Shown: one piece after another, positions 7,455-47,322 of the stretch
Numbering within the stretch: the first letter of the stretch is position 1
How the letters are laid out: every line of letters starts with the position of its first letter
From: Vitrella brassicaformis CCMP3155
Taxonomy: Eukaryota; Protista; Chromerida
Assembly (NCBI GenBank): GCA_001179505.1
Contig: CDMY01000394.1
Span: 1 to 64,000, forward strand
DNA length: 64,000 nucleotides
Direction of reading: 5' to 3'
Program-made: the position numbers and the translations under genes
The notes under the pieces: generated by a model
Told to the model about the DNA's origin: nothing
Database searches by the model: none
Seen by the model: only the letters and a program-made list of their open reading frames with translations

Positions 7455-8157
7455 TGTAGTCTGTGTGGCAGCCGCGCCCCACACCAGCAGCAACAGCAGC
7501 CGCAGCCGCAGTAGCAGCGGCAGCACCGGTGCCCGTGCCGGCCCCAGCAGCTCCGGCCGCCCCATCAGCCCGGCCGGCAGCCTCGCCGCCCGAGGCCAAG
7601 AACCCACCACCGACCACCACCACCACCACCACCACTACACACACCACGAGCGCCACCACCAGCAAGAAGGACACCAACAGGAAGCCCCCCTCCGACGATG
7701 GCTTCGGCAACTTCGGCGACGATGATGACGACGGCGAGGAGGACTGGGCCACCCCCCCGCCGCCCACCAAACCCCCTCAGAAGCAGCAACAGCAGCAGCA
7801 GCAGCAGGGAGGGGGTGCGTTCAGTGGGGGCAGCACGGCGGCCAGCGCGTCGGCGAGTGCGTCGGCCAGTGGTGGTGGTGGTGTTGGTGTTGGTGAGGGT
7901 CCTCTGCCGTGGGTGGATGTGGACCAGGGGGGTATGAGCGTCAGTGAGATCAAGCAGGCTTACCGGGACCTGCACCGCGCGTAAGGCTGGGAAGGAGGGA
8001 GGGGAGCAGACAGGCAGAGAGAAGGGGGACGTGGTGTATGTAACGTGTTGTGTTGGATTCTCCTCTGTGTGTGTGTGTGTGTGTGTGGTGCAGTGCTACG
8101 CAGGAGGTGGACCGGCTGACGAGAGAGCTGCGGGCGGCCAAGGGCGGCCGACCCTGA
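5461..8157 (+). CDS. RNI-like leucine-rich-repeat protein with Pro/Gln-rich tail and short C-terminal coiled coil
   Basis: Multi-exon, with LRR units VNMANNRIGDRGVKAL, ILKLYKNQIAGDGMKALA, ISEIHLSHNKIDEMGATALV and VWLRLEYNLI, then a CGPTFC...PLLHLYALNHQ cap. The last intron starts at 7981 and the exon reads ...HRAATQEVDRLTRELRAAKGGRP*. Confidence 0.72.
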
Positions 8158-8203
8158 CCACAGACATACGCGATGAGTGAAGCGGAGCACGCCACTGGCT
8201 TGG

Positions 8204-8503
8204 NNNNNNNNNNNNNNNNNNNNNNNNNNNNNNNNNNNNNNNNNNNNNNNNNNNNNNNNNNNNNNNNNNNNNNNNNNNNNNNNNNNNNNNNNNNNNNNNN
8301 NNNNNNNNNNNNNNNNNNNNNNNNNNNNNNNNNNNNNNNNNNNNNNNNNNNNNNNNNNNNNNNNNNNNNNNNNNNNNNNNNNNNNNNNNNNNNNNNNNNN
8401 NNNNNNNNNNNNNNNNNNNNNNNNNNNNNNNNNNNNNNNNNNNNNNNNNNNNNNNNNNNNNNNNNNNNNNNNNNNNNNNNNNNNNNNNNNNNNNNNNNNN
8501 NNN
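8204..8503. other. Assembly gap (300 N)
   Basis: Run of exactly 300 N. Confidence 1.
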
Positions 8504-9560
8504 AGGGGAGGGTGGGTCTGGGGGATTGGGTGATTTTGTGATGATGATGCGGTGCGTGTGAGGAAGCTGGGGTACATCTCATGCTGCCTTCATGTGAGAG
8601 CGATCGAGTGCGTGTGTGAGGTGGCGCTTTGAATGAAGGGATGGATGGATGACGAACCAGGCTCACCCCTCACTGGCTGCCTGCCTGCCTCCCTCCCTCC
8701 CTGAATGCCTGCCGGCATGCAGACGGCCTGCGTGTGTTATCTATCCATCTTTTTTCAGCCCTCCTCTCTCCCTCTCTAATGTCTGTGTCGATCTCTGATG
8801 TCTGTGTTGCTCTGCCTCCCTCCGTGTATTCGAGAGCGGTCGACGGTATGATTCATTGCTCCTCTGCATATGGTATGTCTGTAGCCATACGGGCGTTTGT
8901 TAGCCAGCCATACAGCCATGGAGCATGCAGCGTGCCGTGCCGCGCCACACACCGGCCCCCTCTATATCCATGTCTCACTGACCACTTCCCTCTCTATCTC
9001 TGTGGATTTTCTGTCTGTCTGTCTGTGTCTGTGTGTGTATGTAACTCTACGGAACGAAGCGAACGAGGCGACCGATTGAGAGGTTTTAAGCGCACCCGTA
9101 CACGTGTTGACGCACGTGGGGCGGGTGCTCCTCTTATTGCCTACCTGCCTGGCTGGATGGATGACGGATCCATCCCTCCCCTCTCCCTCTCCCTCTCTCT
9201 CTCTGAAGGACTCATAGGCAGAGACAGACCACGTCTCTAGACAGAACTTCTGCGTCTCTATAATTGCGTAGCGGATCGAACGGAAAAACGAGCAGGCAGA
9301 CAGACACAGGAAGGAAAACTTGTGCGCGGTTTCCACAGCACGGCACGGACGCAGAGGCCTCACTCAACGTCACATCACACATCACATCACATCACATCAG
9401 CACCCTCCCTACCCATATCAACAACGCAGCCTCCCACACCCAACTCCCCCACCAACCATCCGATCCACCCCGCCGAAATATCACCCGGGCCGCCGCGCGT
9501 AGATAGATAATTCGACAGCAACTTCGCACGTGCCCCGTCACTCCACTCGCTGCCATCACA

Positions 9561-12442: not shown

Positions 12443-15400
12443 TCACGTCGCAGAGCAGCAGACGATCCTCTGACACGAGACAGCCGGACTCTCCTCCAGT
12501 AACACTCTCGGCCGGCCCATACCGACTGTCTGCACGACTCCTTCCTCACACACAGGCAGGCTCGGCCGAGGTGAGGCGAAGCCGACGGCATTCAGCCGGG
12601 CGATGTTCGGTCTCGGCGAGGCTAGTGGCGGGAATGGCGAGGGTAGAGGGGCGTGTGGACAGAATGGGTGGACGGGGAGGGGCCTCGTCTGAATGCGCGG
12701 CGTCGGCGGGAGAGACACCAGCCGCACGGGCGGCGGACGGGGGCTGGCGTGACTCACGACGCACACGCGGGCAGAGCGAGATGTCTGAAGCCGCAAGGTG
12801 AGACGAGACATATCACATACATCACCAACATGTACACATACATACGTGAATTGGCATCGCTGACCTGATAGCCCTCGTCGGTGTCACGTCTGCACACCGC
12901 AAGGTTCGGGCGGGCAGGATGTGAGCCATCCATCGGTGGGACGGGGAAGGGAGAGAACGGGTCCTGTGGGCACAAGTCACACACAATGCACTTGCAGACA
13001 CCATTGATGCACACGCACGAGTCCCATTGACATACCTGTAGCCTCCCGTTGACAATGCGTCTCATGCCGCGCGTCGGCGAATCAAACAAAGGCCGCTGGA
13101 ACCATGGCTTTGATGTGGGGCATACCGGCCCATTAGGGGATGCAGGGGGTGGACTCCAGGTTATCGCTTCGGCAGCCTGGGGTTGGTACACCAGGGCAGC
13201 GTGTCGTTCGGCAGGCGACGAGGGATCTGCATCTTCTTGGCCCATTCCCTGTCGCCGCTTTCGCCCCTTGGCTGCCCAGTGAGGGACGCCCGGCTCGGAT
13301 GGCGGCGAGGCCTTGGGAAGAGCACCCGGTGCGCTCACCTTTGCGCCACTCACGGACCGTCTTCGCCGTCTGGGGTCGCTCCCAAGCGACTCAGTGCGGG
13401 TGTTCCTCCTCTTTGGTGCATTGCACCCTCGCGACACCAGCCTGGGCGGTGGGGCCTTGATGGCAACAGCAACAGCGGCTGTTGCGGCAGCGGATTGGTG
13501 TCGTGTGGCTGGGTCCGGCATTTGGGGGTCTGCTGGTGCGAGCATCCGCTGTGCCTGAAGGCTGAGGGCATCCACCAAAGGCCCATTGCTCGATATGCCA
13601 TCTGATTGATAAAACAAGACGAAGGCAGCAAGGCTGGTCGTCGGATTCAAACAGTGTGGCATGCGCGGCTTAGTTGTGGTCCGCACCTGTCCCGCCGGGC
13701 CGCGCTGCTCTTTTCGGTGGAGGTGGCGTGTGCAGAATGGGAGACTGTTAGAGGGACAGAGAGGGGGAGACATGAGGGTGTTCATGTCCCTCTCTCATTT
13801 CCCTCCCACCTCAGGTTGGGCATATGCCTTCTCCAGCTCGGCTCTCATCTGTCACGCACACACATACACCAAGTGAATGAGTGGAAGCATAGCATCTGTG
13901 TGATTCTACGAATAGGGCACACCCACTTGGTTGTTCTCGGCTTCCAGTTTGTCCACCATCAGCCTCAGGTCGACCTCAGTCTTTCTTGCGTGAGCTATTT
14001 CTTCCACCTTGCCCTGGCCAGCAGCGCCTCCAGGTCGATCTGGCGAGACGTCGGCAGCGGGTCGGACGGAGAAGCGGCGTCACTCTCCCTCTGTTCCTCA
14101 GTGGCCGCTGCTATGCCACCGGATGGCGCACTCTCGCGATTACCGTATGTGTCAGTGTTGCTGCGCCTGAAGAGGCGAGCAGCACAGTGCGTGGTGATCT
14201 GCTTGTGGTGTTTTGTGTTACTGGTAGTGTTGTCTCCGTTTGCTGTCTTGCGAGCCGTGGCGGTCAGATGGGGGGTCTGAGTCATCGTCGCTCTCATCGA
14301 CACTGCTGAGGGACCGCTGGCCCCCGCCAAATGGTCCCTCAGCACCGGTGGTGTGTGAGCGGACCACACGACGCCTGGCGGCGTTGTGGAGCTCCGACTG
14401 GAAGAGCTCGTCTGCGAGTGAGACTCGCTTGGTGAGGTTGGCGGCCTGGATGCGGGACCTGTGGCCCAGCTCTTCATCCAACTCTTGCACCTATGTATGC
14501 ATGGACACATCCACAGATACACAGACACTCATCTGAGACACGAAACTTCAATGAGCCAAGATCTGGCTTCCTTACCCTCTGTCTCATGTTATCCAGGTCT
14601 TGCTGGAGGTAGCCGATGCGCGCCAAGTGGTCCCTCTGCTCGCCCTCCAGTCGGTCCTTCTCCACCCTCTCTGTGTCCAGCTGCCTCTCCAACTCATGAA
14701 TCCGGTCCAGCAACTCATGACGCTCCCTAACAGCAACCGCACACAACACAGGTCATTCAGTCGACGAGAGGTGCCAGACTGACAGCGCAGACAGACAGCA
14801 GGCACCACATACTTACTTTTCCAATGATTTGCATGTGCGTCTGAGGGCCTCCTGGCTTCTCTTGTGCGATTCCATCACTGCCGTCAGTTCCTGCTGGGCG
14901 TCTGTATCCTGCAAAGACTCCGATGACCCCTGTGGGCTGTGCTGGCGGTCGCCAAGAAGTTCCAGACTCTGACGCATGGCGTCCATCTGACGCAAGGAGA
15001 GGAAAGGCAGGGCGTGCCTCATTCCTCAGATGAACGAATGGATCGGTTCCATTCGTCCATGCATTTCACCTCTCTGCGATGTTCGAGTGTCTGCGCCTCC
15101 AGCAACTGGCGGCCCTCCTCAACCTCAGCCTCCAATGCTGTCTCCCTCTCGCGCAGACTCTCAATCCTCCTCCCCTGGTGGGCATTCGTCTCCCGCAGCG
15201 CCTCCACCTCCCTCTCAGCTGCCGCCAGTGAGCTCATGATCTCATCGCTCCACTCCATGTGCCGTCTCTCCACGTCAGCATCAGCAGCCGTCCTTCGCCT
15301 CGCCCGTCTCTCCAGCTCACGCACACGCCCCTCCCTCTCCTCCAGCTCCTGCATGCGGCAGCTGACCGCCGATGCCTTGGCCTTGGCGCGCCAGTACTTG

Positions 15401-15924
15401 GCGTATGACCGCACTCGCATGAGTGTCGAGAGGCTGACTGGGGAGGCCTGTGGGCGAGATGGGGGGACGGGTGTGGTTGGGGGAGGGTTGCGGCCCTCAT
15501 TTGCTGAACGGCGTGAAGGCGAGTGGACGGACGGCTGTGTTGCAGTGGGCGGTTTGGGGCTGAGCTGACGGGAGAGTCTCTGGCCGGGTGGTGAGCTGAT
15601 CTTCTCGTCCGAAGGTATCGAGAACCGCCTGCCTTTCCTCGTGACGCTATCCTGTTTATTGTCTGCGTTTGCTTCAGGTGCAAGGGCGGACTTGCGCTGA
15701 GTCGGCGGGCTCTGAGGCACGCTGCTCCGTCTGCGGCCTTCATGGCGGATGGCCTGGGAAGTTTGCTGCTGCTCGAACGAGCGGGATGCGGGCACCCACG
15801 TTCGCAGAGATTTGTTGGTCTTGCCCATTGCAAGTCGCATCGGCGTTGGTACCGAGGCATGATGGCTGGTCGGGCTTGTACCCCCCTCTGCACTGTGGCG
15901 TCGTTGAGGCGGAGGAGGCTGCAT
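12443..15924 (-). CDS. Hypothetical coiled-coil / low-complexity protein (multi-exon; apparent 1-nt frameshift near 14010)
   Basis: In-phase coiled-coil exons include ...ELEEREGRVRELERR..., MDAMRQSLELL..., ERHELLDRIHELERQLD..., VQELDEELGHR... and DLRLMVDKLEAENNQ|MRAELEKAYAQPE. The C-terminus is Pro/Ser-rich. Start and end are approximate. Confidence 0.65.
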
Positions 15925-16181
15925 CTGATCTGTCACAAATGGGGGGCGAGCCGCGAGTGGGGGGCAAGATCGGAATCTCTGCGGGGGTTGCACTCATTGC
16001 TTTCGCTGTACATGCTGCATTTCTAGCCACTACATTCGCCTCTGCACTTCGGTTTGCCTCGCGTGAGTGCAAAATCAAGCATTGTAAGATGCATCTGGCC
16101 GGCACTCGAGCTGTTCGCAGCTCCCAATCCGCCCATCCATGGGATCCATCCATCCCCATCGATCGCATCCCACGTATCACA

Positions 16182-17640
16182 TCACTCTTGGACGGGCTCG
16201 AGTGTGTCGAGCGCCCGCTGCAGGTCGGGGGCCAGGCCGCAGTCCACCTCAGTCGGCTCCTTGGACAGATCCTCAAACCTCAACCGATGGCAGTGCAGAA
16301 ACACACGGGGACACCTGTACGTACACAGATACACAGACAGACAGACGCACAGCCAGAACACCCAACCAATCAGCATATTGTGTGGACTGACTGACTGGAC
16401 TTGTGTGCAATTTCATTTGGCCGACCGACCGACTGACCATTGTCTGTCGGTGTTGCCGAGGCCCGTGCCGGCGAGGTACTTGGCGTCGGCAACCAGGGGA
16501 TGGCCAGCATGCTTCAGATGCACCCTGTCAGAAGCACGTGGCCCTCACAGACACACGCCCACATGGATGAGCAGCATGACAACCATGGTATGATGATAAC
16601 TCACCCCACCTGATTTGGTGTGTCCGTCCAGTGACGAGCTTGACGCGGCACAGTGAGAGCACCTCGCCAGTGTCGGGGTGGCGGTAGCCCCTTTGCCCCT
16701 CGAAGAAGGTCAGCGCCGTCTATATCAGGCACACACAGGCCACGTCGAGGAACTGTGTGTGGCTCCCTTTGCCCGCTTACCCTTCCAGCGTCGGACACTT
16801 CGGTGAAGAGGCTGTTTTGGGGGCCACGGCTGGTGCGGAGCTTCGCGTCAACTGCAGACGGACAGCCACGTGGTGGCACGCGGAAGTTCTGGCACTGTGT
16901 GACTACATTGTGTGTACCTTTGTGTTCTCCGGGCGCGACGTCGCCGTGCACAAGGCACATGTACTCCTGACCGAATGAATGACGATACGACACGTCGAGT
17001 TTGCCATCAACCGGTGAGTGAGGTGACGCGTTGCAAGGCCTCCCACCCCACTGGCCACTGGCTGGCTGACCTTGTGCACATATCTAGCTTCGAACAGCAG
17101 CCGGCTGTAGTAGAAACCCTTGTACGTCTTGGCTACGAGAATCGGACCTGATATACACACAGACAGAGACCACCGGGACGAACATACATATTCGTCACAC
17201 AGCGAGCGGCTCGCCCTGCCCCTTTTTCCCTTCATTCTCACTCACCGCTGGTGTGTATGTCGAGTCTGTGTGTAAAGCCGAATGACACGAGTGGGTCGTT
17301 GGACACCTCACTGGGAAAGTGGTCGCGCACCCACTGCTGCAGCAGCATCGACGAGCCGACACAGCCGGCCTTCGCACCAGGGCCATCATCACCACCACCA
17401 CCAGGGGCGTCGGATGTGTCGTCGGCTTGGTCGTCAGCTGCCTCATCCGATTCGTCCCTCTTCATCCCTGACCCACCGTGTGAGAGATTCACGTGTGCAC
17501 ATACATTTGGGAATGCATGCACACGTGTGTGTGTGTGAGCGTGTGTGACGTGACTGACCTCGTTGGTTGTGGAGGCCGCCCAGTATGCCATCTGACGGGG
17601 TGTAGGGATTCACTATCCACCCTGGCGGCTTGTAGAAGAC
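16182..17640 (-). CDS. RluA-family pseudouridine synthase domain (probably the C-terminal part of the upstream helical-repeat gene)
   Basis: Motif I VFYKPPGW; catalytic motif GFTHRLDIHTSG|PILVAKT; EYMCLVHG; LVTGRTHQIR; GHPLVADAKY; PRVFLHCHRLRF...APDLQRALDTL; stop at 16182. Confidence 0.92.
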
Positions 17641-17756
17641 CTGCACACAGACATGATACACACCACACACACACAGAGAGGAAGAAACAGTGAGTCCTTC
17701 GGCTCCCTCGTGGATGGGTGCACACACACAGGCATACAGATCACGCACAAAGGCTC

Positions 17757-20700
17757 TCACCCCCTGGCCACCACCACATGACACTCAGACAGAGAAGCAT
17801 CGGGCAGCAGAGAGAAGAGCGAGTCATGCAGGCGGTCTCGCTGTGCAAGATGCAGGCTAGAGGTACTGTACTGGCCACCACTCCCCACCACACGGCTGAC
17901 TCTCCCCGCCAGCTCATGCAAGTACTCTGTATCGAGAACACGCGCACATCTCAGCGCATCCACGCACACATGGAAACACCCCCACTCCAGCTGGAACCGC
18001 CGTCGCCACGCATCCATAATCGCGTCGTGTGATAGGGGGAATGATGAGCCACGGAGGAACTTCTGCAGCCGGTGTTGGTGCACCACGGCCTCCGGATACT
18101 CACGCCGATAAAGCGACGGCTCCTTCCACGGCAGAAGGGCCGATCGGCTCAGCAGCTCTCCTCTTAGCAAAGACCACACCCCAGTGAACACGACCTCGTC
18201 GGCGCACAGTCCGGCCATCTTGGCGTGTGATTGCGCGAGGCTCGCCAGGTGGGTCCATGACAGCAGCAGCGCCTTTTGGTGCGACATGCGCTCGGACGCT
18301 CTCACGAACCGCGCGAAAGAGGTGGAAGGGGCAGCTGATGGGGTGGTGAGGAGCCGCTCGATGAACGTGGTAAGCCGGCAGAGGGCATCCAGGCTCACAG
18401 CCGACCTCTCCAGCTCATCGGCCACCCGCGATGCAACCGTGTCACCGATCTCATGTGCCGTGTTGACGTCGATCAGTTCATCAACTGGCTTGCCGCTCGC
18501 CATGGCAGCCCCAGCGACCTCATCCAGATCCTTCCATCCATAGTGCCGAGCATTTGCCGACACGTGACGCAGCGCACCCTTCAGCAACGGCTCATGGTCG
18601 ATAGCCGCCCGCCGGCAGCTGCCCACAAGGTTGCTGACGTCTTGCGCTCGGTAAGGCCGGATATCACCACTCAGCAGCCTCGACGCTTCCTTGGTTGCTA
18701 TCGACTCGAGAGCGGTGCGGCAAGGGACTCGCGAGGTGGAGAGAGCCCAAGCGGCTGCGGCTGCATCTGAGGACGAGAAGTCAGTCACGTGCTGGTGGAT
18801 GTGGAGGGCTGCCGCAGCGAACAGCTGCTGGACTGTGGCGTGTCTGCAGCTGCCTGCGACCGCAAAGGCCCAGAGGAGCTTGGACAGCTGTGGGGGCGAG
18901 ATGGAGGAGCGCCGCAGACGGGCCAGAACCTCATTCGCCGCTCTCTCATGGAAAGCCGTGAGGGGATCAGATGGGTGTGCTGAGCCGGCTGCCTCGCTCC
19001 CGCCACCATCACGATCACCAGCTGCCGACCGCCCGTCGATGCTGGCTACGAAATTGGCCATGGAGACCATGAAGACAGTCAGCTCGTGAGGTGACAAGGA
19101 CTCGAGCCGCTGGCCGAGCTCATTCGCGAGCTTCTCCACCACATGGCTGGGACACATGCGCACCGACGAGAAGGCCCAGAGGATGTTGGCAACGTGCTGG
19201 GCCGAAAAGGATGACAGAGGGGGAATGCCGCACTCCTCTGACAGCCCCTTGCTGATGTGCTCAAAGGCCTCGTATAGGCGGGGGCTGCGGTGTCCGTGCC
19301 GGTGAAGGATGGCCAGCGACCACAAGGCATTGGACACACCCTGGGAGCTGCACTCATGAAGGGTCGACACGAACCGGCCCACAATGCTCTCGATGCGGCT
19401 GCTGCTGAGCGGGTTGGCTGGCTGCAGGACTTTTTTCTGCGTCATAGTGGCAACGGCCCACAGCAGGTTGACCGTCTCGATGGGGATGAAGCGATGAAGC
19501 TCCCTTGCGACGATGGGATCCATGCGCACCATAATGCTGTCAGTCAGCTCGTGCAATGCTGAACTATCCGATGACGGCTCGGTGAACACTGCCAGTGCCC
19601 ATGAGAGGTTGCCCACGTCGCGGCTCCGCCACTTGCCCGGCTGGCTGTCGAGGGCCGCACTCAGCAGCTGCAGCACCCTCATCTCGTGTGGACCACTGAC
19701 AGAGCTCCCCTTGCCACCTTTCTTGAGCTTGGCCAGCCGATGGGCCGCTGTGACCAGATTGATGCGGTCGAAGTCGGCAGCATGCCGGTCGATCAGCCGT
19801 GTCAAGGCCTCCAGAGTGTGAGCATCCCTAAGCCTGTTGTTGAGCATGAGCTGCAGGGAGCTGATGGACGCCAGTGTGTCGGGCATGTCCTCAAGGGGGC
19901 GGGGTGGTTCACGAGTCGTGACGGTGGAGGGGTCCCTCTTGTGTGAGTGGATGTAAGAGAAGAAGCGGCACTGCTGCTGGAAGGACGGCCGGATGAGAGC
20001 TGGCCCGGTTGTTGTGAGGGCAGGGGTCGTTGCCTGGTTGGCAGCACAGCACACAAAGCCACCCTCGCGAGCAACACAATGGATAGATACGGGCATCCAT
20101 GCATCAATAATGAATGCAGCAGGGGGTGAGAGCACCACACCACACACGCACCCCGCCCCACCCACTCCCTCTTCCCCCCACTCCACTCACCATCAGATTC
20201 TCCGTCTCGGCCAGTACGCGAGGAGGGTCGCCGCTCAACAAGTCCACCTTCCTCGGCTGCTTCGGCACCGCAGCGCCCCTCCCGCCGTTGGCATCCCTCA
20301 GCGCCGCATCGAGGAACCTCGTGACCTGTTTGGCGAGGAAGTCGAAGTCGGATCGGTCCAGCTGCTGGCTGTATGCGAGCGACCAGACGACCGTCTTGAC
20401 CATCTCGATGTCGTACGTCTTGACAACCATCTCGCTGTTCTCTCCAAGTGACCGTAGGTGCCGGAGCAACGCATTGAGGAAGTCGCCATCCAGCCGACCC
20501 GCCTCAGCAAGTGCCCATGTGACGTGGGAAAGGCCCGTTTTGCTGAAGTCATAAAGACGGGGGATGGCCGCTCGTGCGACGGCGTCGAAGAAGGCCGGGT
20601 GCGGCACGGTGACCTGCCCCATCGCCCAAGCCGTGTGGGCCATGTCCTGTGTCGAGAAGTCTTCTGGCTTGGTGGTGAGGAGGTGGGTGAACCGGTCGGC

Positions 20701-22690
20701 CAGCCGGACAAACAGCTGCGGGTGACGCTCGGTGGCTCCGTCACGCCCGCCTGCAGAGGCAAAGGATTTGACCAGAGATGAGACCACGATTGTGAGGGCA
20801 CTGGCAGGGAAGGCATCTATCACACGCCCCGCGCCCAACAAAGCCGCAAAGGCATCACACAGCCGAGCCGACTCGTCTGCCGACGGTGGTGGGGTGGCCC
20901 ACTCGCTGCTGTTGGTGTTGGTGTTGGTGTTCTTGTCAGTGGCCGTTCTCCATTTCCGGTATTCCCAGAAGAGGGAGCCGATGCCGGCCGACCAGAGCAC
21001 TGCTGCCGCCTCCCCCGGCTTGAAGTGCTCAGCTGACCCTGCCGCCCGCCGCATCAGCAACGTCATGGCCGCCCCCCACTCTGGCCGTGCAACCTCTGCC
21101 GGCAAATCGACGTCAGTCAGCTCCCACTCGCTCGCACGCCGTCTGTCGGGGACAGTAGCAGTCTCTTCGCCGAGTGTGGCTGCTGTGGCTGCTGTGGCCG
21201 GGTGGGGGGTCATGTTGAGGGCCAGTGCCTTGGCCGATGGGTCCTCCAGCCGCTGCTTCACTTCCCGTGTCTGTATCTGCATACCTTCCACAGTGACGGT
21301 CGCGAACGCCCACATCGTGTTGGAAATCCCCTGCGGATGGAACTGCTCCACGCGGCCCTCACGCAGGATCTCTCGCGCCACCTCGCGAAACAGACGGACG
21401 TGCGGCGCGCCGTCGAGGCCCAGAGTTGCGTAAGACCACACGAGGTTCGACAGGCCTTGGACAGGAAAGCTCTTAAGCTTGCGGGGGGCTCGCTCAGCGA
21501 TGGCCAGCAGCATCTCTCGGATGGCGATAGCCAGGCTGGGGTACTTGTCCTCGAGCATCTCCCTGTCGAAGCCGAGGGTGGCGAGCGACCATGCCGTGTT
21601 GGTCATGACCTGGTTGACGGCCGAGTGGTGCACTCTGCCGCCCTGCAGGTCCTTCTGGATGCGCCGCAGCACCGTCACGAACAGCGAGGCCTTCTCGAGA
21701 ATCAGCTGATGGACGGGCGTGGGCGACTCGCCGCCCGTCGAGCGACGGTACTCCCGCACCAGACTCTGGTGCTTGCCTTGCTTGTAGAACTGCGCGCGAG
21801 CCTGCTTGCCCCCACTGAACTTGGCTAGCCGATGGACGCCCGTCACCAAATTCACCTGACACCCCCCCCCCCCCAACACACACATCCAACCATGGAGGCC
21901 CTCGTTTTCTGTGTGAGTATCTATCTGGTTCTCTTACTGTGTCCATGTTCCGTCCCTCATCCTCAAGCAGCTTCACGACCTCCTCTGGCGTCTGTGTGGC
22001 CCCGAGCATCTTATTGAGCTCCACATTCCGATGGAAACCGTCCTGGTCGCTCCTGCGAGACCCCTGTGTCCGCCTCAACTGTCCCTCTCCGGACGCAGCC
22101 GCAACCTCCCGGCTGTCACCTTGTGTTGCGGCCGATTCCGAGCTGAACGGCCGTCGTGCAGTCACGCGGGAGAGAGGCCAGGCCGGCTGCCGCATGCCGC
22201 AGGGTACCCCACCCCACCCGACAACAAAGTCCAAGGCAGAGGCGCACATCACACAGATGGAATGAACGCATCAGGACAGGCACAGCATGGCATGGCATGG
22301 CACGCATCGTGTGCAAGAAGCCACAGCACCCATAGGCATCAGCCATGCACCCCAATCTGATCTGATTTGATCTTCCCCCCGTCTGCCTTCCCACTAACTT
22401 ACCCTTTGGTGCTGATTCTCCTTCAGAAGCCGCGGCGGATCCGCATCGGCTGCAGTACGAGTCATGGAAAACCACCGCCTCGACCGCCATGAAGGGTAAG
22501 GGATAAGAGGAGGCTCAACTGCTCCTCTGCTGCTCACAGGCAAGCCCCGTCTTCCGCACAGAGACCTCTCGTCATCAGCAGATCTGCGTGGGCAGGGCGG
22601 CCTCGCGGGCTGCAGAGAGGGACCGTCGCACGGCCTTGCTGCTGTGGCCCTCCTCGCAGGGAGCCGCAGATGTCGCTCCAGAAGACCCAT
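17757..22690 (-). CDS. Organelle-targeted helical-repeat RNA-binding protein (HPR/OPR/FASTK-like) with two tandem repeat modules
   Basis: Repeats of the type FPVQGLSNLVWSYATLG, FHPQGISNTMWAFAT, FSTQDMAHTAWAMGQ, WRSRDVGNLSWALAV, FIPIETVNLLWAVAT, FSAQHVANILWAFSS and ISPPQLSKLLWAFAVAG. In-phase introns at 21856-21937 and 20034-20190. The 5' exons and start codon (~22690) are tentative. Confidence 0.8.
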
Positions 22691-22916: not shown

Positions 22917-23473
22917 ATGAGCAAGCGTGAGGGTCAGAAGACCATCTTTGAGTTCAACCGCTACCTCAACAAGAGGGTCAGAGTCAAATTCAACGGAGGC
23001 AGAGAAGGTGAGTGCGTCAGCACCAACACCCACTCACTGACGGCACCAGCTTGAGGGAAAACTGTGCGTGTGTGTGTCGGATGCTTGTGATGCATGTCCC
23101 GTCAGTGACGGGCATCCTGAAGGGCCATGACCAGGTGTGCAACCTCGTCCTCGATGACACAGAGGAGTACCGCAGAGGTGCACCGCACTCGCACAACAGT
23201 CTGGTACTCGGTGGATCTGTCTGTTGGTCATCTTGTCAACTGGCCTGTGTTTCCCTGGAGCAGATCCCGATGATCCGTTCAAGCTGCTCAACGAAACACG
23301 CCAGCTCGGCCTGGTGGTCGCCAGAGGCACTGCGGTAAGCACATAGACACACAGCGACCGCACTGATTCTGCGTTGCGTGGATGCGTGTGTGTGAGTTCA
23401 GGTGATGTTGGTGTCGCCAGTTGAGGGGATGGAGGAGATATCCAACCCCTTCGTCAATGTGGCCGAGTCATGA
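22917..23473 (+). CDS. LSM7: U6 snRNA-associated Sm-like protein LSm7
   Basis: Four exons give MSKREGQKTIFEFNRYLNKRVRVKFNGGREVTGILKGHDQVCNLVLDDTEEYRRDPDDPFKLLNETRQLGLVVARGTAVMLVSPVEGMEEISNPFVNVAES*. Confidence 0.96.
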
Positions 23474-45873: not shown

Positions 45874-47322
45874 TCATTGTGGCATGGATCGCGTCTTCAA
45901 GTAGGCGGGGACGAGCATCGTCAGCTTCTTGAGCTTGGACACATAGGCGCGCTTCCTCAGGTTGTCGTAGTCGTTGCGCTCGATGACCGTCAGGATGCCC
46001 CTGTAGACGTCCAAAGCCGTCTGCACGGCCAGCCGTGCGCTGGGGTGCAGCAGCGCCACCCCCCTCTCGGCACTCTCATAGTAGAGCTGGGCCTTCTGGA
46101 TGTAGTACTTGACCAGCTCCTTGTATTGGTCCGTCACCCGGTGCTGAAAAATATCCCTCTCGCTCACGCCGAACTTCTGCAGGTCCTCCTGGGGGAGGTA
46201 GATGCGGCCCCGGTCTGCATCCTCACCCACGTCACGCAGGATGTTGGTGATCTGGAAGGCGATCCCCAGGTCGACGGCGTGTGGCGCCGCGTCGATGGCT
46301 CGCGCGCCTCGTGAGGTGCCGAGGATGGGGAGGGTCATGAGGCCGACCGTGCCAGCGACTCGGTAGCAGTAGAGGTACAGCTCGTTCCAGTCGCGGTATT
46401 TCTGCTGGTCGAGGTCCATGAGCATGCCCTTGATCATGTCCTGGAAGGGCTCGATCGCCAGAGAGGGGTACATGTCCCTCGTGTCCGCCAGGGCGCTGTC
46501 CAGCACATCCACGCACCGTCCCCGCCATATGTTGGCCAGCCGCTGCTCCCACAAGACGATCTGATTCGCCAACGTCTGGCGGTCAGTGATGAGCGCCCGC
46601 GGTGAGTCGACGAGGTCGTCGGTGCGCCGGCACCACACGTAGACGGCCCAGAGGTTCTTGGCCTTCTCGGGTGAGATCATCTGTGTGCCGAGGTAGAAGG
46701 TCTTGCTGTAGATGGCCGTGATGCGCTTGCACGCCTCGTAGCCGAGCTCGATGGCCTTGGCGCGCCGCGTCTCGTCGCGCAGCACGTCCCTGTGGCTGAA
46801 GGCCTGATCGCTGCCCACATCCAGGGGCGGAGAAAACCACAACAGGTCCGAGTAATCCTGGTGGTACAAGCGGGGGGTGGGGGGCGGAGGGGGAGGGGCC
46901 ACACGGGGGGCGTGGCTGGTGTGGGGAGGTGACACCAGGCCGGAAAGGGTGTCGTTTGCCGGCAGTGGGTCCATGGTGAGGCCCGGAGAAATGCCGACAG
47001 CCGAGGGGATGGAGCGATAGATGTGAGCAGGGTAGTCGGCCGTGGCGAACCCATCAGCCGTCGCCGTTGCCGTCGCACTGGCGGCCCTCACGGTAGTGGC
47101 GGCAGACAGCTGGGAAGGCGAGGCCGAAGGGGCTTTCCTGTCTGCTCCGCCCCTGTGCCGTGCCCGCCGCTTGTTCGCCCGGATGGACTTGTTTGACATG
47201 CTGCAACACGCAAACGCCGACCGCTGATCAGCGCGGAGAAAAGACCAAGGACGGGGAGAGGGGCGAGAGACTGCAAGCAGCACCCACACAATACATACAC
47301 GCAGAGAAATGCGTCCACTCAT
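45874..47322 (-). CDS. PSY: Phytoene synthase with bipartite (signal + transit) plastid-targeting N-terminus, single exon
   Basis: YSKTFYLGT, WAVYVWCRRTDDLVD, ELYLYCYRVAGTVGLM, LGIAFQITNILRDVGEDADRGRIYLPQEDL, IERNDYDNLRKRAYV; hydrophobic N-terminus VCIVWVLLAVS. Confidence 0.97.
   Translation of the reverse strand: MSGRISLRVCIVWVLLAVSRPSPRPWSFLRADQRSAFACCSMSNKSIRANKRRARHRGGADRKAPSASPSQLSAATTVRAASATATATADGFATADYPAHIYRSIPSAVGISPGLTMDPLPANDTLSGLVSPPHTSHAPRVAPPPPPPTPRLYHQDYSDLLWFSPPLDVGSDQAFSHRDVLRDETRRAKAIELGYEACKRITAIYSKTFYLGTQMISPEKAKNLWAVYVWCRRTDDLVDSPRALITDRQTLANQIVLWEQRLANIWRGRCVDVLDSALADTRDMYPSLAIEPFQDMIKGMLMDLDQQKYRDWNELYLYCYRVAGTVGLMTLPILGTSRGARAIDAAPHAVDLGIAFQITNILRDVGEDADRGRIYLPQEDLQKFGVSERDIFQHRVTDQYKELVKYYIQKAQLYYESAERGVALLHPSARLAVQTALDVYRGILTVIERNDYDNLRKRAYVSKLKKLTMLVPAYLKTRSMPQ

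Follow-up and report, generated by a model that had tools for sequence, protein, structure and literature searches.

A helical-repeat array probably joined to an RluA-type pseudouridine synthase across an ORF-containing intron in Vitrella brassicaformis

Which protein carries the catalytic domain of a pseudouridine synthase whose exons cannot begin translation on their own? This question is raised by a locus on the minus strand of contig CDMY01000394.1 (assembly GCA_001179505.1) of Vitrella brassicaformis CCMP3155, where two open reading frames (ORFs) rich in helical repeats, here called A and B, precede a set of exons encoding an RluA-type domain. The stretch analysed, referred to below as the window, is nuclear DNA of this chromerid alga; it covers 64,000 nucleotides (nt), and its coordinates are those of the contig. 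A first-pass annotation had described the repeats as one array of about 1300 amino acids (aa), fused to the RluA domain that follows it. We consider it likely that a single minus-strand gene encodes a fusion protein of about 935 aa, composed of an N-terminal leader, array A and the RluA domain, and that B is spliced out. In other words, the fused array would comprise about 555 aa rather than 1300, because the RluA exons are most likely joined to A and not to B. The model consisting of exon 1, exon 2 and exons a to h reads through 935 aa with no internal stop.

Transcript evidence came from X1, a contig set from a sequencing run that behaves as RNA, for which depth was available as coarse bins, and from X8, a second run. 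Splice sites were scored with a position weight matrix (PWM) derived from 17 splice sites of the fusion gene and of a Vitrella paralog, and the junction between repeats and catalytic domain was scored with a hidden Markov model (HMM) built on five fused homologs. It should be mentioned that several low-complexity intron stretches rich in CA/TG (16323-16364, 17513-17552, and 17639-17675) draw many contigs of other genome loci, which creates false joints and depth peaks.

By three-frame translation and splice-site reading, the RluA part resolves into eight GT-AG exons with a combined in-frame length of 831 nt, encoding 276 aa. The pieces of X1 record 1 reproduce the exon chain b-c-d-e-f-g-h, allowing 1-2 ambiguous bases per joint; exons c, d, and e together measure 197 nt as predicted and 195 nt plus 2 ambiguous bases as observed, and the g-h joint is visible in X8 as well. 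The 3' untranslated region of the gene reaches at least 16050. All the catalytic motifs are intact in the model: KPPGW; HRLD with the catalytic Asp (17270-17259, residues 753-756 of the protein model); and TGRTHQIR (16632-16524), which an intron splits between exons f and g. The column of the catalytic Asp and the TGRTHQIR motif are invariant in the family alignment, and of the 41 residues that never vary across the RluA part of this eight-protein alignment, the model retains 38. A phmmer search with the 276-aa model matched five database proteins (E 2e-25 to 2e-31), each of which passes Pfam PF00849 (PseudoU_synth_2) at 58-74 bits (cut-off 26.8); the membership of the model in PF00849 is thus assigned via these five relatives and not from the spliced protein itself. 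The single RluA exon ORFs gave no Pfam match, a consequence of their short exons and of the translated intron that flanks them. For the catalytic domain of the paralog, the nearest solved structures are RluC and RluD (E 2e-18). Judged from its sequence, the domain is a complete RluC/RluD-like pseudouridine synthase with intact catalytic motifs and predicted activity.

Exon a opens at the acceptor 17640 (cag/GTC TTC TAC AAG, VFYK...). It has no ATG, and three-frame translation shows no Met upstream in its frame; the RluA domain therefore cannot start alone. The first-pass annotation had noted this acceptor, the intact HRLD and TGRTHQIR motifs, and the missing start codon, and the exon chain bears it out. 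These features make it barely credible that the RluA exons form a gene by themselves, or an untranslated remnant, transcribed from a start downstream of 17757, with the repeat ORFs standing alone. Such a division would suit the stop codon of B, 117 nt upstream of exon a, and the RNA depth, which is 18.8 on the RluA exons and 4.6-9.2 on A. However, the greater depth at the 3' side can be explained by 3' bias, the first Met of the RluA frame lies in exon b and would remove the KPxGW strand, and an untranslated remnant would hardly keep eight exons in frame together with so many invariant residues. The half of the RluA hairpin that exon a lacks is, moreover, encoded at the end of A.

This hairpin provides an argument for the identity of the partner. 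The N-terminal hairpin of RluA, which ends in K-P-x-G, straddles the junction: its first half lies at the end of exon 2, its second in exon a. Array A finishes with the residues ...DPPRVLAETENLM at a phase-0 donor, ATG/GTGAGT, and the joined product reads RVLAETENLM/VFYKPPGW (end of A, PPRVLAETENLM). Aligned with this junction are the Vitrella paralog (APLVLHETEDVM/VLYKPPRW, within LVLHETEDVM/VLYKPPRW), a protein of Polarella (DPRVVLDLSDRL VVEKPAGW, within RVVLDLSDRL VVEKPAGW), and RluC (ADVILYEDDHILVLNKPS; E. coli RluC reads DVILYEDDHILVLNKPS). Because it aligns with the paralog, Polarella, and RluC, the tail of A is the missing first strand of the hairpin. In the hairpin HMM, the A tail plus RluA scored 219.9 bits, a gain of 17 bits over RluA alone (202.6). 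One hundred shuffles of the last 20 residues of A gave 205.1 +/- 1.9 bits (+2.5) with a maximum of 211.1, and all B-tail variants, at 203-206 bits, stayed within this noise.

The splice sites point in the same direction. The paralog has a 56-nt intron at the identical site and in the identical phase (M/V). Both the donor of A and the acceptor at 17640 score 11.5 in the PWM, whereas the in-frame donors of B score -0.6 to -1.4; among the 17 reference donors the minimum is 3.1, and 15 of them carry G at +5. X1 record 2 tracks A to 20189/20190 and then departs from the genome, with 2 extra nt, GT, that match the start of exon a. AG/GT sites in frame inside B fall in X1 bins at zero depth; using the acceptor of exon c (17147) would break the frame, and X1 record 1 already accounts for the depth of its bin. 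Because these other sites are eliminated, 17640 is the remaining acceptor for record 2. The remaining 183 nt of this record then correspond to exon a (82 nt) plus 101 nt of exon b, and the record so read would end 3 nt from the start of record 1. Taken together, a splice from 20191 to 17640 is very likely the junction, and we regard it as the probable main isoform.

Several observations weigh against this interpretation. No read or contig visibly crosses 20191^17640, and for this reason the splice is rated very likely rather than certain. The contribution of X1 record 2 consists of two nucleotides, a coincidence of length, and coarse depth bins, and the a/b junction is without confirmation from the listed RNA pieces. 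Word searches with A and B found no annotated product of 326-1415 aa containing either. Array A scores 22.7 bits with FAST_1 (PF06743), under the cut-off of 27.4, and its structural model is of moderate confidence only (predicted local distance difference test, pLDDT, 61). Lastly, B is intact, of coding type, and directly before the RluA exons, which makes a B-containing isoform possible. It can be added that the word searches, exact look-ups of eight ORFs, and a contig walk returned only ORF-type calls on a Logan contig, and that the spliced A^a junction had no matches in metagenome contigs.

The coordinates of the gene and of the ORF within it are collected in Table 1.

Table 1. Parts of the proposed fusion gene and of its long intron, with the evidence for each (window coordinates).
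Feature	Position	Strand	Remarks
Exon 1, N-terminal leader	21938-22249	-	104 aa from the putative start ATG at 22249; ends ...EDEGRNMDT
Exon 2, array A	21855-20191	-	555 aa, one exon; X1 records 2-5 on it
Long intron	17641-20190	-	2550 nt; separates array A from RluA exon a; contains ORF B
ORF B, divergent helical-repeat ORF	20096-17757	-	779 aa from first ATG; TGA 17759-17757
RluA exon a	17640-17559	-	VFYKPPGW...; second half of hairpin, KPxGW motif; acceptor score 11.5
RluA exon b	17467-17246	-	acidic low-complexity insert, then catalytic HRLD; X1 record 1 covers 17363-17244
RluA exon c	17147-17071	-	length sum agrees with X1 record 1
RluA exon d	16966-16918	-	splice-site reading; X1 record 1
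RluA exon e	16851-16781	-	splice-site reading; X1 record 1
RluA exon f	16719-16610	-	ends ...TGRTHQI R; X1 record 1 piece 16609-16719
RluA exon g	16524-16438	-	X8 record 23 piece 16436-16527
RluA exon h	16314-16182	-	stop TGA 16184-16182; X1 record 1 and X8 record 23

What, then, is ORF B? The single array of about 1300 aa in the first-pass annotation proved to be two ORFs, which share 24% identity over 241 aa, and the second of them occupies an intron far longer than the other eight of the gene (61-123 nt). B is open from 20186, giving 809 codons, for which the probability of an opening by chance at the local base composition is 7e-11. Its G+C contents at codon positions 1, 2, and 3 (0.635/0.497/0.725) resemble those of A and of the RluA exons; in the RluA introns the G+C content is 0.546. 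Because of this long, chance-unlikely opening and its coding-type composition, B can be taken, on its sequence, as a coding region that is real or was so until very recently. It has an N-terminal head motif of its own (...DFDRINLVTAAHRLAKL), similar to one in the paralog (...DFDSLNLITA), it matches FAST_1 at 32.9 bits, above the cut-off, and it has 646 relatives in a large database search. X1 depth is zero over 17850-20049, that is, over B, and is present on A and the RluA exons. Comparison with about 300 fetched proteins gave no relative for the last 250 aa of B, and an AlphaFold2 (AF2) single-sequence model of this C-terminus was uninformative (pLDDT 38); its Atlas features resemble RESC6/FAST_1 helices. 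A hidden RAP or nuclease domain in this region was considered and rejected, as there is no Pfam match and the Atlas features are those of helical repeats.

A junction between B and the RluA exons, as the first-pass annotation had placed it across 17757-17640, did not survive this analysis. B ends in TGA, and the donor-like GG/GTGAGA at that stop is in phase 2 and does not fit the phase-0 acceptor at 17640; the joined frame would reach a stop after nine codons. The stop codon of B itself overlaps the donor-like GGTGAGA. No other AG is present in the T/G-rich stretch before 17640 as an alternative acceptor. Upstream phase-0 GT sites were rejected for scoring under every reference donor, and the hypothetical junction ...VVVARG/VFYK gave 203.0 bits in the hairpin HMM, which is noise. 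The possibility that the assembly miscounts the G5 run at 17760 by one base was also discarded, since contigs of two DNA runs match the window there free of gaps. The idea that B is a former partner of RluA was given up as well, given a tail devoid of hairpin signal and a C-terminus devoid of relatives among the fetched proteins.

The same evidence bears on the serial model of the first-pass annotation, in which A, B, and RluA would form one protein of about 1700 aa by a splice just before the TGA at 17757 to 17640. All three lie on the same strand, every candidate junction is possible in phase 0, and a longer product would suit the absence of annotated products of 326-1415 aa. However, GT opens the exon spliced to the donor of A, and an exon starting at the best candidate acceptor near the head of B would open with CAG; the 5' acceptors of B are weak (best 6.6) and its in-frame 3' donors score below zero. 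The tail of A would moreover leave half an RluA hairpin stranded mid-protein, and X1 shows zero depth on B. No Vitrella protein containing B was found in the search with B, though the library includes Vitrella proteins. We therefore regard the serial model as very improbable.

Another arrangement would use both arrays. UGT1A and the clustered protocadherins are genes in which variable exons are joined to constant ones, and by analogy A and B might be spliced alternatively to the same RluA exons to serve two RNA sites. Transcripts with B would start before B, or would splice exon 1 to it, and would leave B by a weak in-frame donor, GTG/GTGGTG or GTG/GTGGCC at 17774/17771. Such an isoform would keep the frame, all the exon phases being 0, and would encode about 1050 aa, similar to the paralog of 1047 aa; B is an intact ORF of 779-809 codons with coding-type composition and carries a head motif, as A and the paralog do, and one confirmed donor of the same gene is weak too (CAG/GTGGGG). 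Against this reading, these B donors fall below all 17 references and have no G at +5, the tail of B adds nothing to the hairpin score beyond the shuffled range, and X1 gives B no RNA coverage. Alternative use of B thus seems unlikely. Under the single-gene model, B is most likely a separate, anciently diverged repeat ORF nested in the intron and not part of the fusion protein. As a nested gene it might have a promoter of its own, or exon 1 could be joined to B at 19973, a phase-0 acceptor that is weak; a third possibility is an in-frame, likewise weak splice onto the RluA exons.

At the other end of the gene, exon 1 closes with a phase-0 donor (ACA/GTAAGA), and the following intron (21937-21856, 82 nt) is set by X1 RNA contigs 5 and 6. 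A second Met follows 19 codons after the first ATG of the frame, and the 25 residues after it are basic and hydroxylated, with four K/R and one D/E. By composition, a mitochondrial presequence fits this leader loosely. Directly before the exon 2 acceptor (tgtgttggggggggggggggtgtcag/GTG) lies a run of about 14 G (21856-21880, minus strand), which is unusual at the position of a pyrimidine tract; the intron is nonetheless confirmed by the RNA contigs.

Array A, whose ORF is open from 21885 to 20104, has the N-terminal head motif ...NLVTGVHRLAKF. Both A and B contain motifs of the xxLSNxxWAxA type. Set against the period of about 37-38 aa typical of HPR/OPR/FASTK-like tandem repeats, the motifs are spaced by 37 residues in places and elsewhere irregularly (93-122) in A, and mostly by 41-48 in B. 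The repeats of A match HPR arrays many times (whole-protein E 1e-74), and the Logan ORF call for A shows a faint RESC6 match. Structure prediction, which the first-pass annotation had proposed, gave an all-helical AF2 model of A from a 10-sequence alignment, with two blocks at pLDDT 70-90. Its top Foldseek matches are trypanosome RESC6 and the mitoribosomal OPR/HPR repeat proteins of Polytomella, Chlamydomonas, and Toxoplasma (E 2e-6 to 7e-4; template modelling score 0.25-0.57). On this model A is a FASTK/HPR/OPR-like alpha-solenoid that would bind RNA. Neither RAP nor FAST_2 was matched in A or B by Pfam at E <= 1, in line with the missing RAP domain of the first-pass annotation, and without these domains A and B are not filed as FASTK/RAP proteins.

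If a repeat array is joined to an RluA domain at this locus, is the same architecture seen elsewhere? PseudoU_synth_2 follows FAST_1-type repeats in five of the 150 best relatives of B. The search for this architecture, also proposed at the first pass, led to the Vitrella brassicaformis CCMP3155 paralog CEM18906.1 (A0A0G4FW72; 1047 aa, FAST_1-type repeats plus PseudoU_synth_2), to the dinoflagellate genomes with Polarella glacialis CAE8626030.1, CAE8668292.1, CAE8670102.1, and CAE8625477.1 (1076-1305 aa), to an Alexandrium monilatum MMETSP transcript (926 aa), and to a metagenomic protein with an added SAP domain; repeats and PseudoU_synth_2 are combined in all of them. Residues 293-1076 of Polarella CAE8670102.1, a stretch that extends from the repeats to the end of the RluA domain, are encoded by a single exon; because repeats and RluA share one exon, this fusion needs no splicing assumption. 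The first-pass proposal of a fused array has thus held with regard to the architecture, which recurs in the paralog and the dinoflagellates, and has changed with regard to the partner, which is most likely A and not the adjacent B.

The database fusions have the same hairpin junction as the Vitrella gene and share the 41 invariant residues of the RluA part. They differ in how the junction is built: within one exon in Polarella, across a 56-nt intron in the Vitrella paralog, and across a 2550-nt intron with a repeat ORF here. Their database entries bear automatic names only, and in the literature, the HPR, RAP, and Toxoplasma mitoribosome papers included, we found no fusion of a repeat array and a pseudouridine synthase. 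The gene belongs to a family of repeat-array/RluA fusions that is visible in databases but undescribed; its locus structure is unusual, and the gene structure is what is new here.

Relatives of B also combine the repeats with other enzymes. In Chrysophaeum taylorii KAJ8601617.1 (P0101), Peptidase_U32 and collagenase-like DUF3656 domains accompany repeats and RAP, and another relative (P0121) has repeats with REase_MTES_1575/DUF559 nuclease-like domains. The repeat array seems to be a general aiming module. Among the best relatives of B (E 1e-21) there is also a 915-aa DUF1601/RAP protein of the coral-associated bacterium Endozoicomonas acroporae (WP_432390255.1 and WP_163371605.1; P0005 and P0153), that is, an architecture of eukaryote-type organellar RNA-binding proteins in a bacterial genome.

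How might the fusion protein work? Array A occupies the position of the S4 RNA-binding domain in bacterial RluC/RluD, and it may recognise a particular single-stranded segment of an organellar RNA, with rRNA as the most plausible target. The bound array would then present a nearby uridine to the RluA active site, with the Asp of HRLD, and paralogs with different arrays would each modify their own site. Seen in this way, the fusion would be a version in cis of the human FASTKD2/RPUSD3/RPUSD4/TRUB2 module. Site-specific pseudouridylation in an organelle is a reasonable inference from the architecture; a tie to fragmented mitochondrial rRNA, as the first-pass annotation had imagined, is speculation.

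To our knowledge, pseudouridine synthases act either as stand-alone enzymes with small RNA-binding domains (S4, PUA, and THUMP) or guided by H/ACA RNA. If the mechanism sketched above is true, the family would represent a third solution, namely protein-programmed, site-specific pseudouridylation by a PPR-like array covalently joined to an RluC/RluD-type domain, in a fusion family that spans chromerids and dinoflagellates. As a counterpart in cis of FASTKD2-RPUSD4, it would make the idea that FASTK-type repeats provide specificity directly testable. Should the repeats follow a recognition code, they could serve as a template for engineered site-directed pseudouridylation; and if A and B were both spliced to the RluA exons after all, one locus would make two enzymes, a natural guide swap on a protein-only RNA-modifying enzyme. 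The locus is also a warning for annotation: the neighbouring ORF is most likely not the partner in the fusion, and an intron of 2.5 kb hides a second repeat gene in a genome whose introns measure about 60-120 nt.

Some other features of the window should be mentioned. Upstream of the gene lies an LSm-like exon (23012-23338, plus strand), with a weak PF01423 match on a Logan ORF call, and a multi-exon coiled-coil protein (14218-15993, minus strand) starts about 250 nt downstream of the RluA stop. A single-exon gene at 45874-47199 (minus strand) encodes a 15-cis-phytoene synthase of 441 aa, whose nearest named relative, in Chromera velia, shows 59% identity. A run of N at about 7950-8580 is an assembly gap and appears as X in translations.

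Among known systems, the catalytic part is closest to RluC and RluD, which act on 23S rRNA (PDB 1xpi, 1v9k, 1prz, and 1v9f) and share with it the hairpin ...ILYEDDHILVLNKPSG, the Asp of HRLD, and GRTHQIR. They carry a small N-terminal S4 domain where the Vitrella gene has a helical-repeat solenoid of 555 aa. The Vitrella RluA part further differs in an acidic low-complexity insert between KPxGW and HRLD, and it belongs to a nuclear gene with nine introns.

In overall design, the protein recalls the PPR-DYW editing factors of plant organelles, a family of many paralogs in which an RNA-reading repeat array is followed by a C-terminal base-modifying enzyme. Those factors combine PPR repeats with a cytidine deaminase and belong to another lineage, whereas the Vitrella protein would combine FASTK/HPR/OPR-like repeats with a pseudouridine synthase. 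For the latter repeats we know of no recognition code.

Array A has repeat motifs of the kind (xxLSNxxWAxA) present in apicomplexan HPR/RAP proteins, in mitoribosomal HPR/OPR proteins (PMC6212722; PMC11652630; compared structures PDB 9i05, 9g6k, 7pkt, and 8a22), and in RESC6 (8fni). These proteins consist of repeats only or end in RAP, and the HPR/RAP and mitoribosome papers mention no pseudouridine synthase domain (PMC6212722; PMC11652630).

A functional parallel is human FASTKD2, which belongs with RPUSD3, RPUSD4, TRUB2, NGRN, and WBSCR16 to a module for pseudouridylation on mitochondrial 16S rRNA, and which has been speculated to supply the RNA-binding specificity of this module (PMC5737537). 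As in the Vitrella gene, a FASTK-type helical-repeat RNA binder is paired with RluA-family synthases. In the human module they act in trans as separate polypeptides, and FASTKD2 also carries FAST_2 and RAP; in Vitrella the repeats and the synthase would form one chain, with no RAP.

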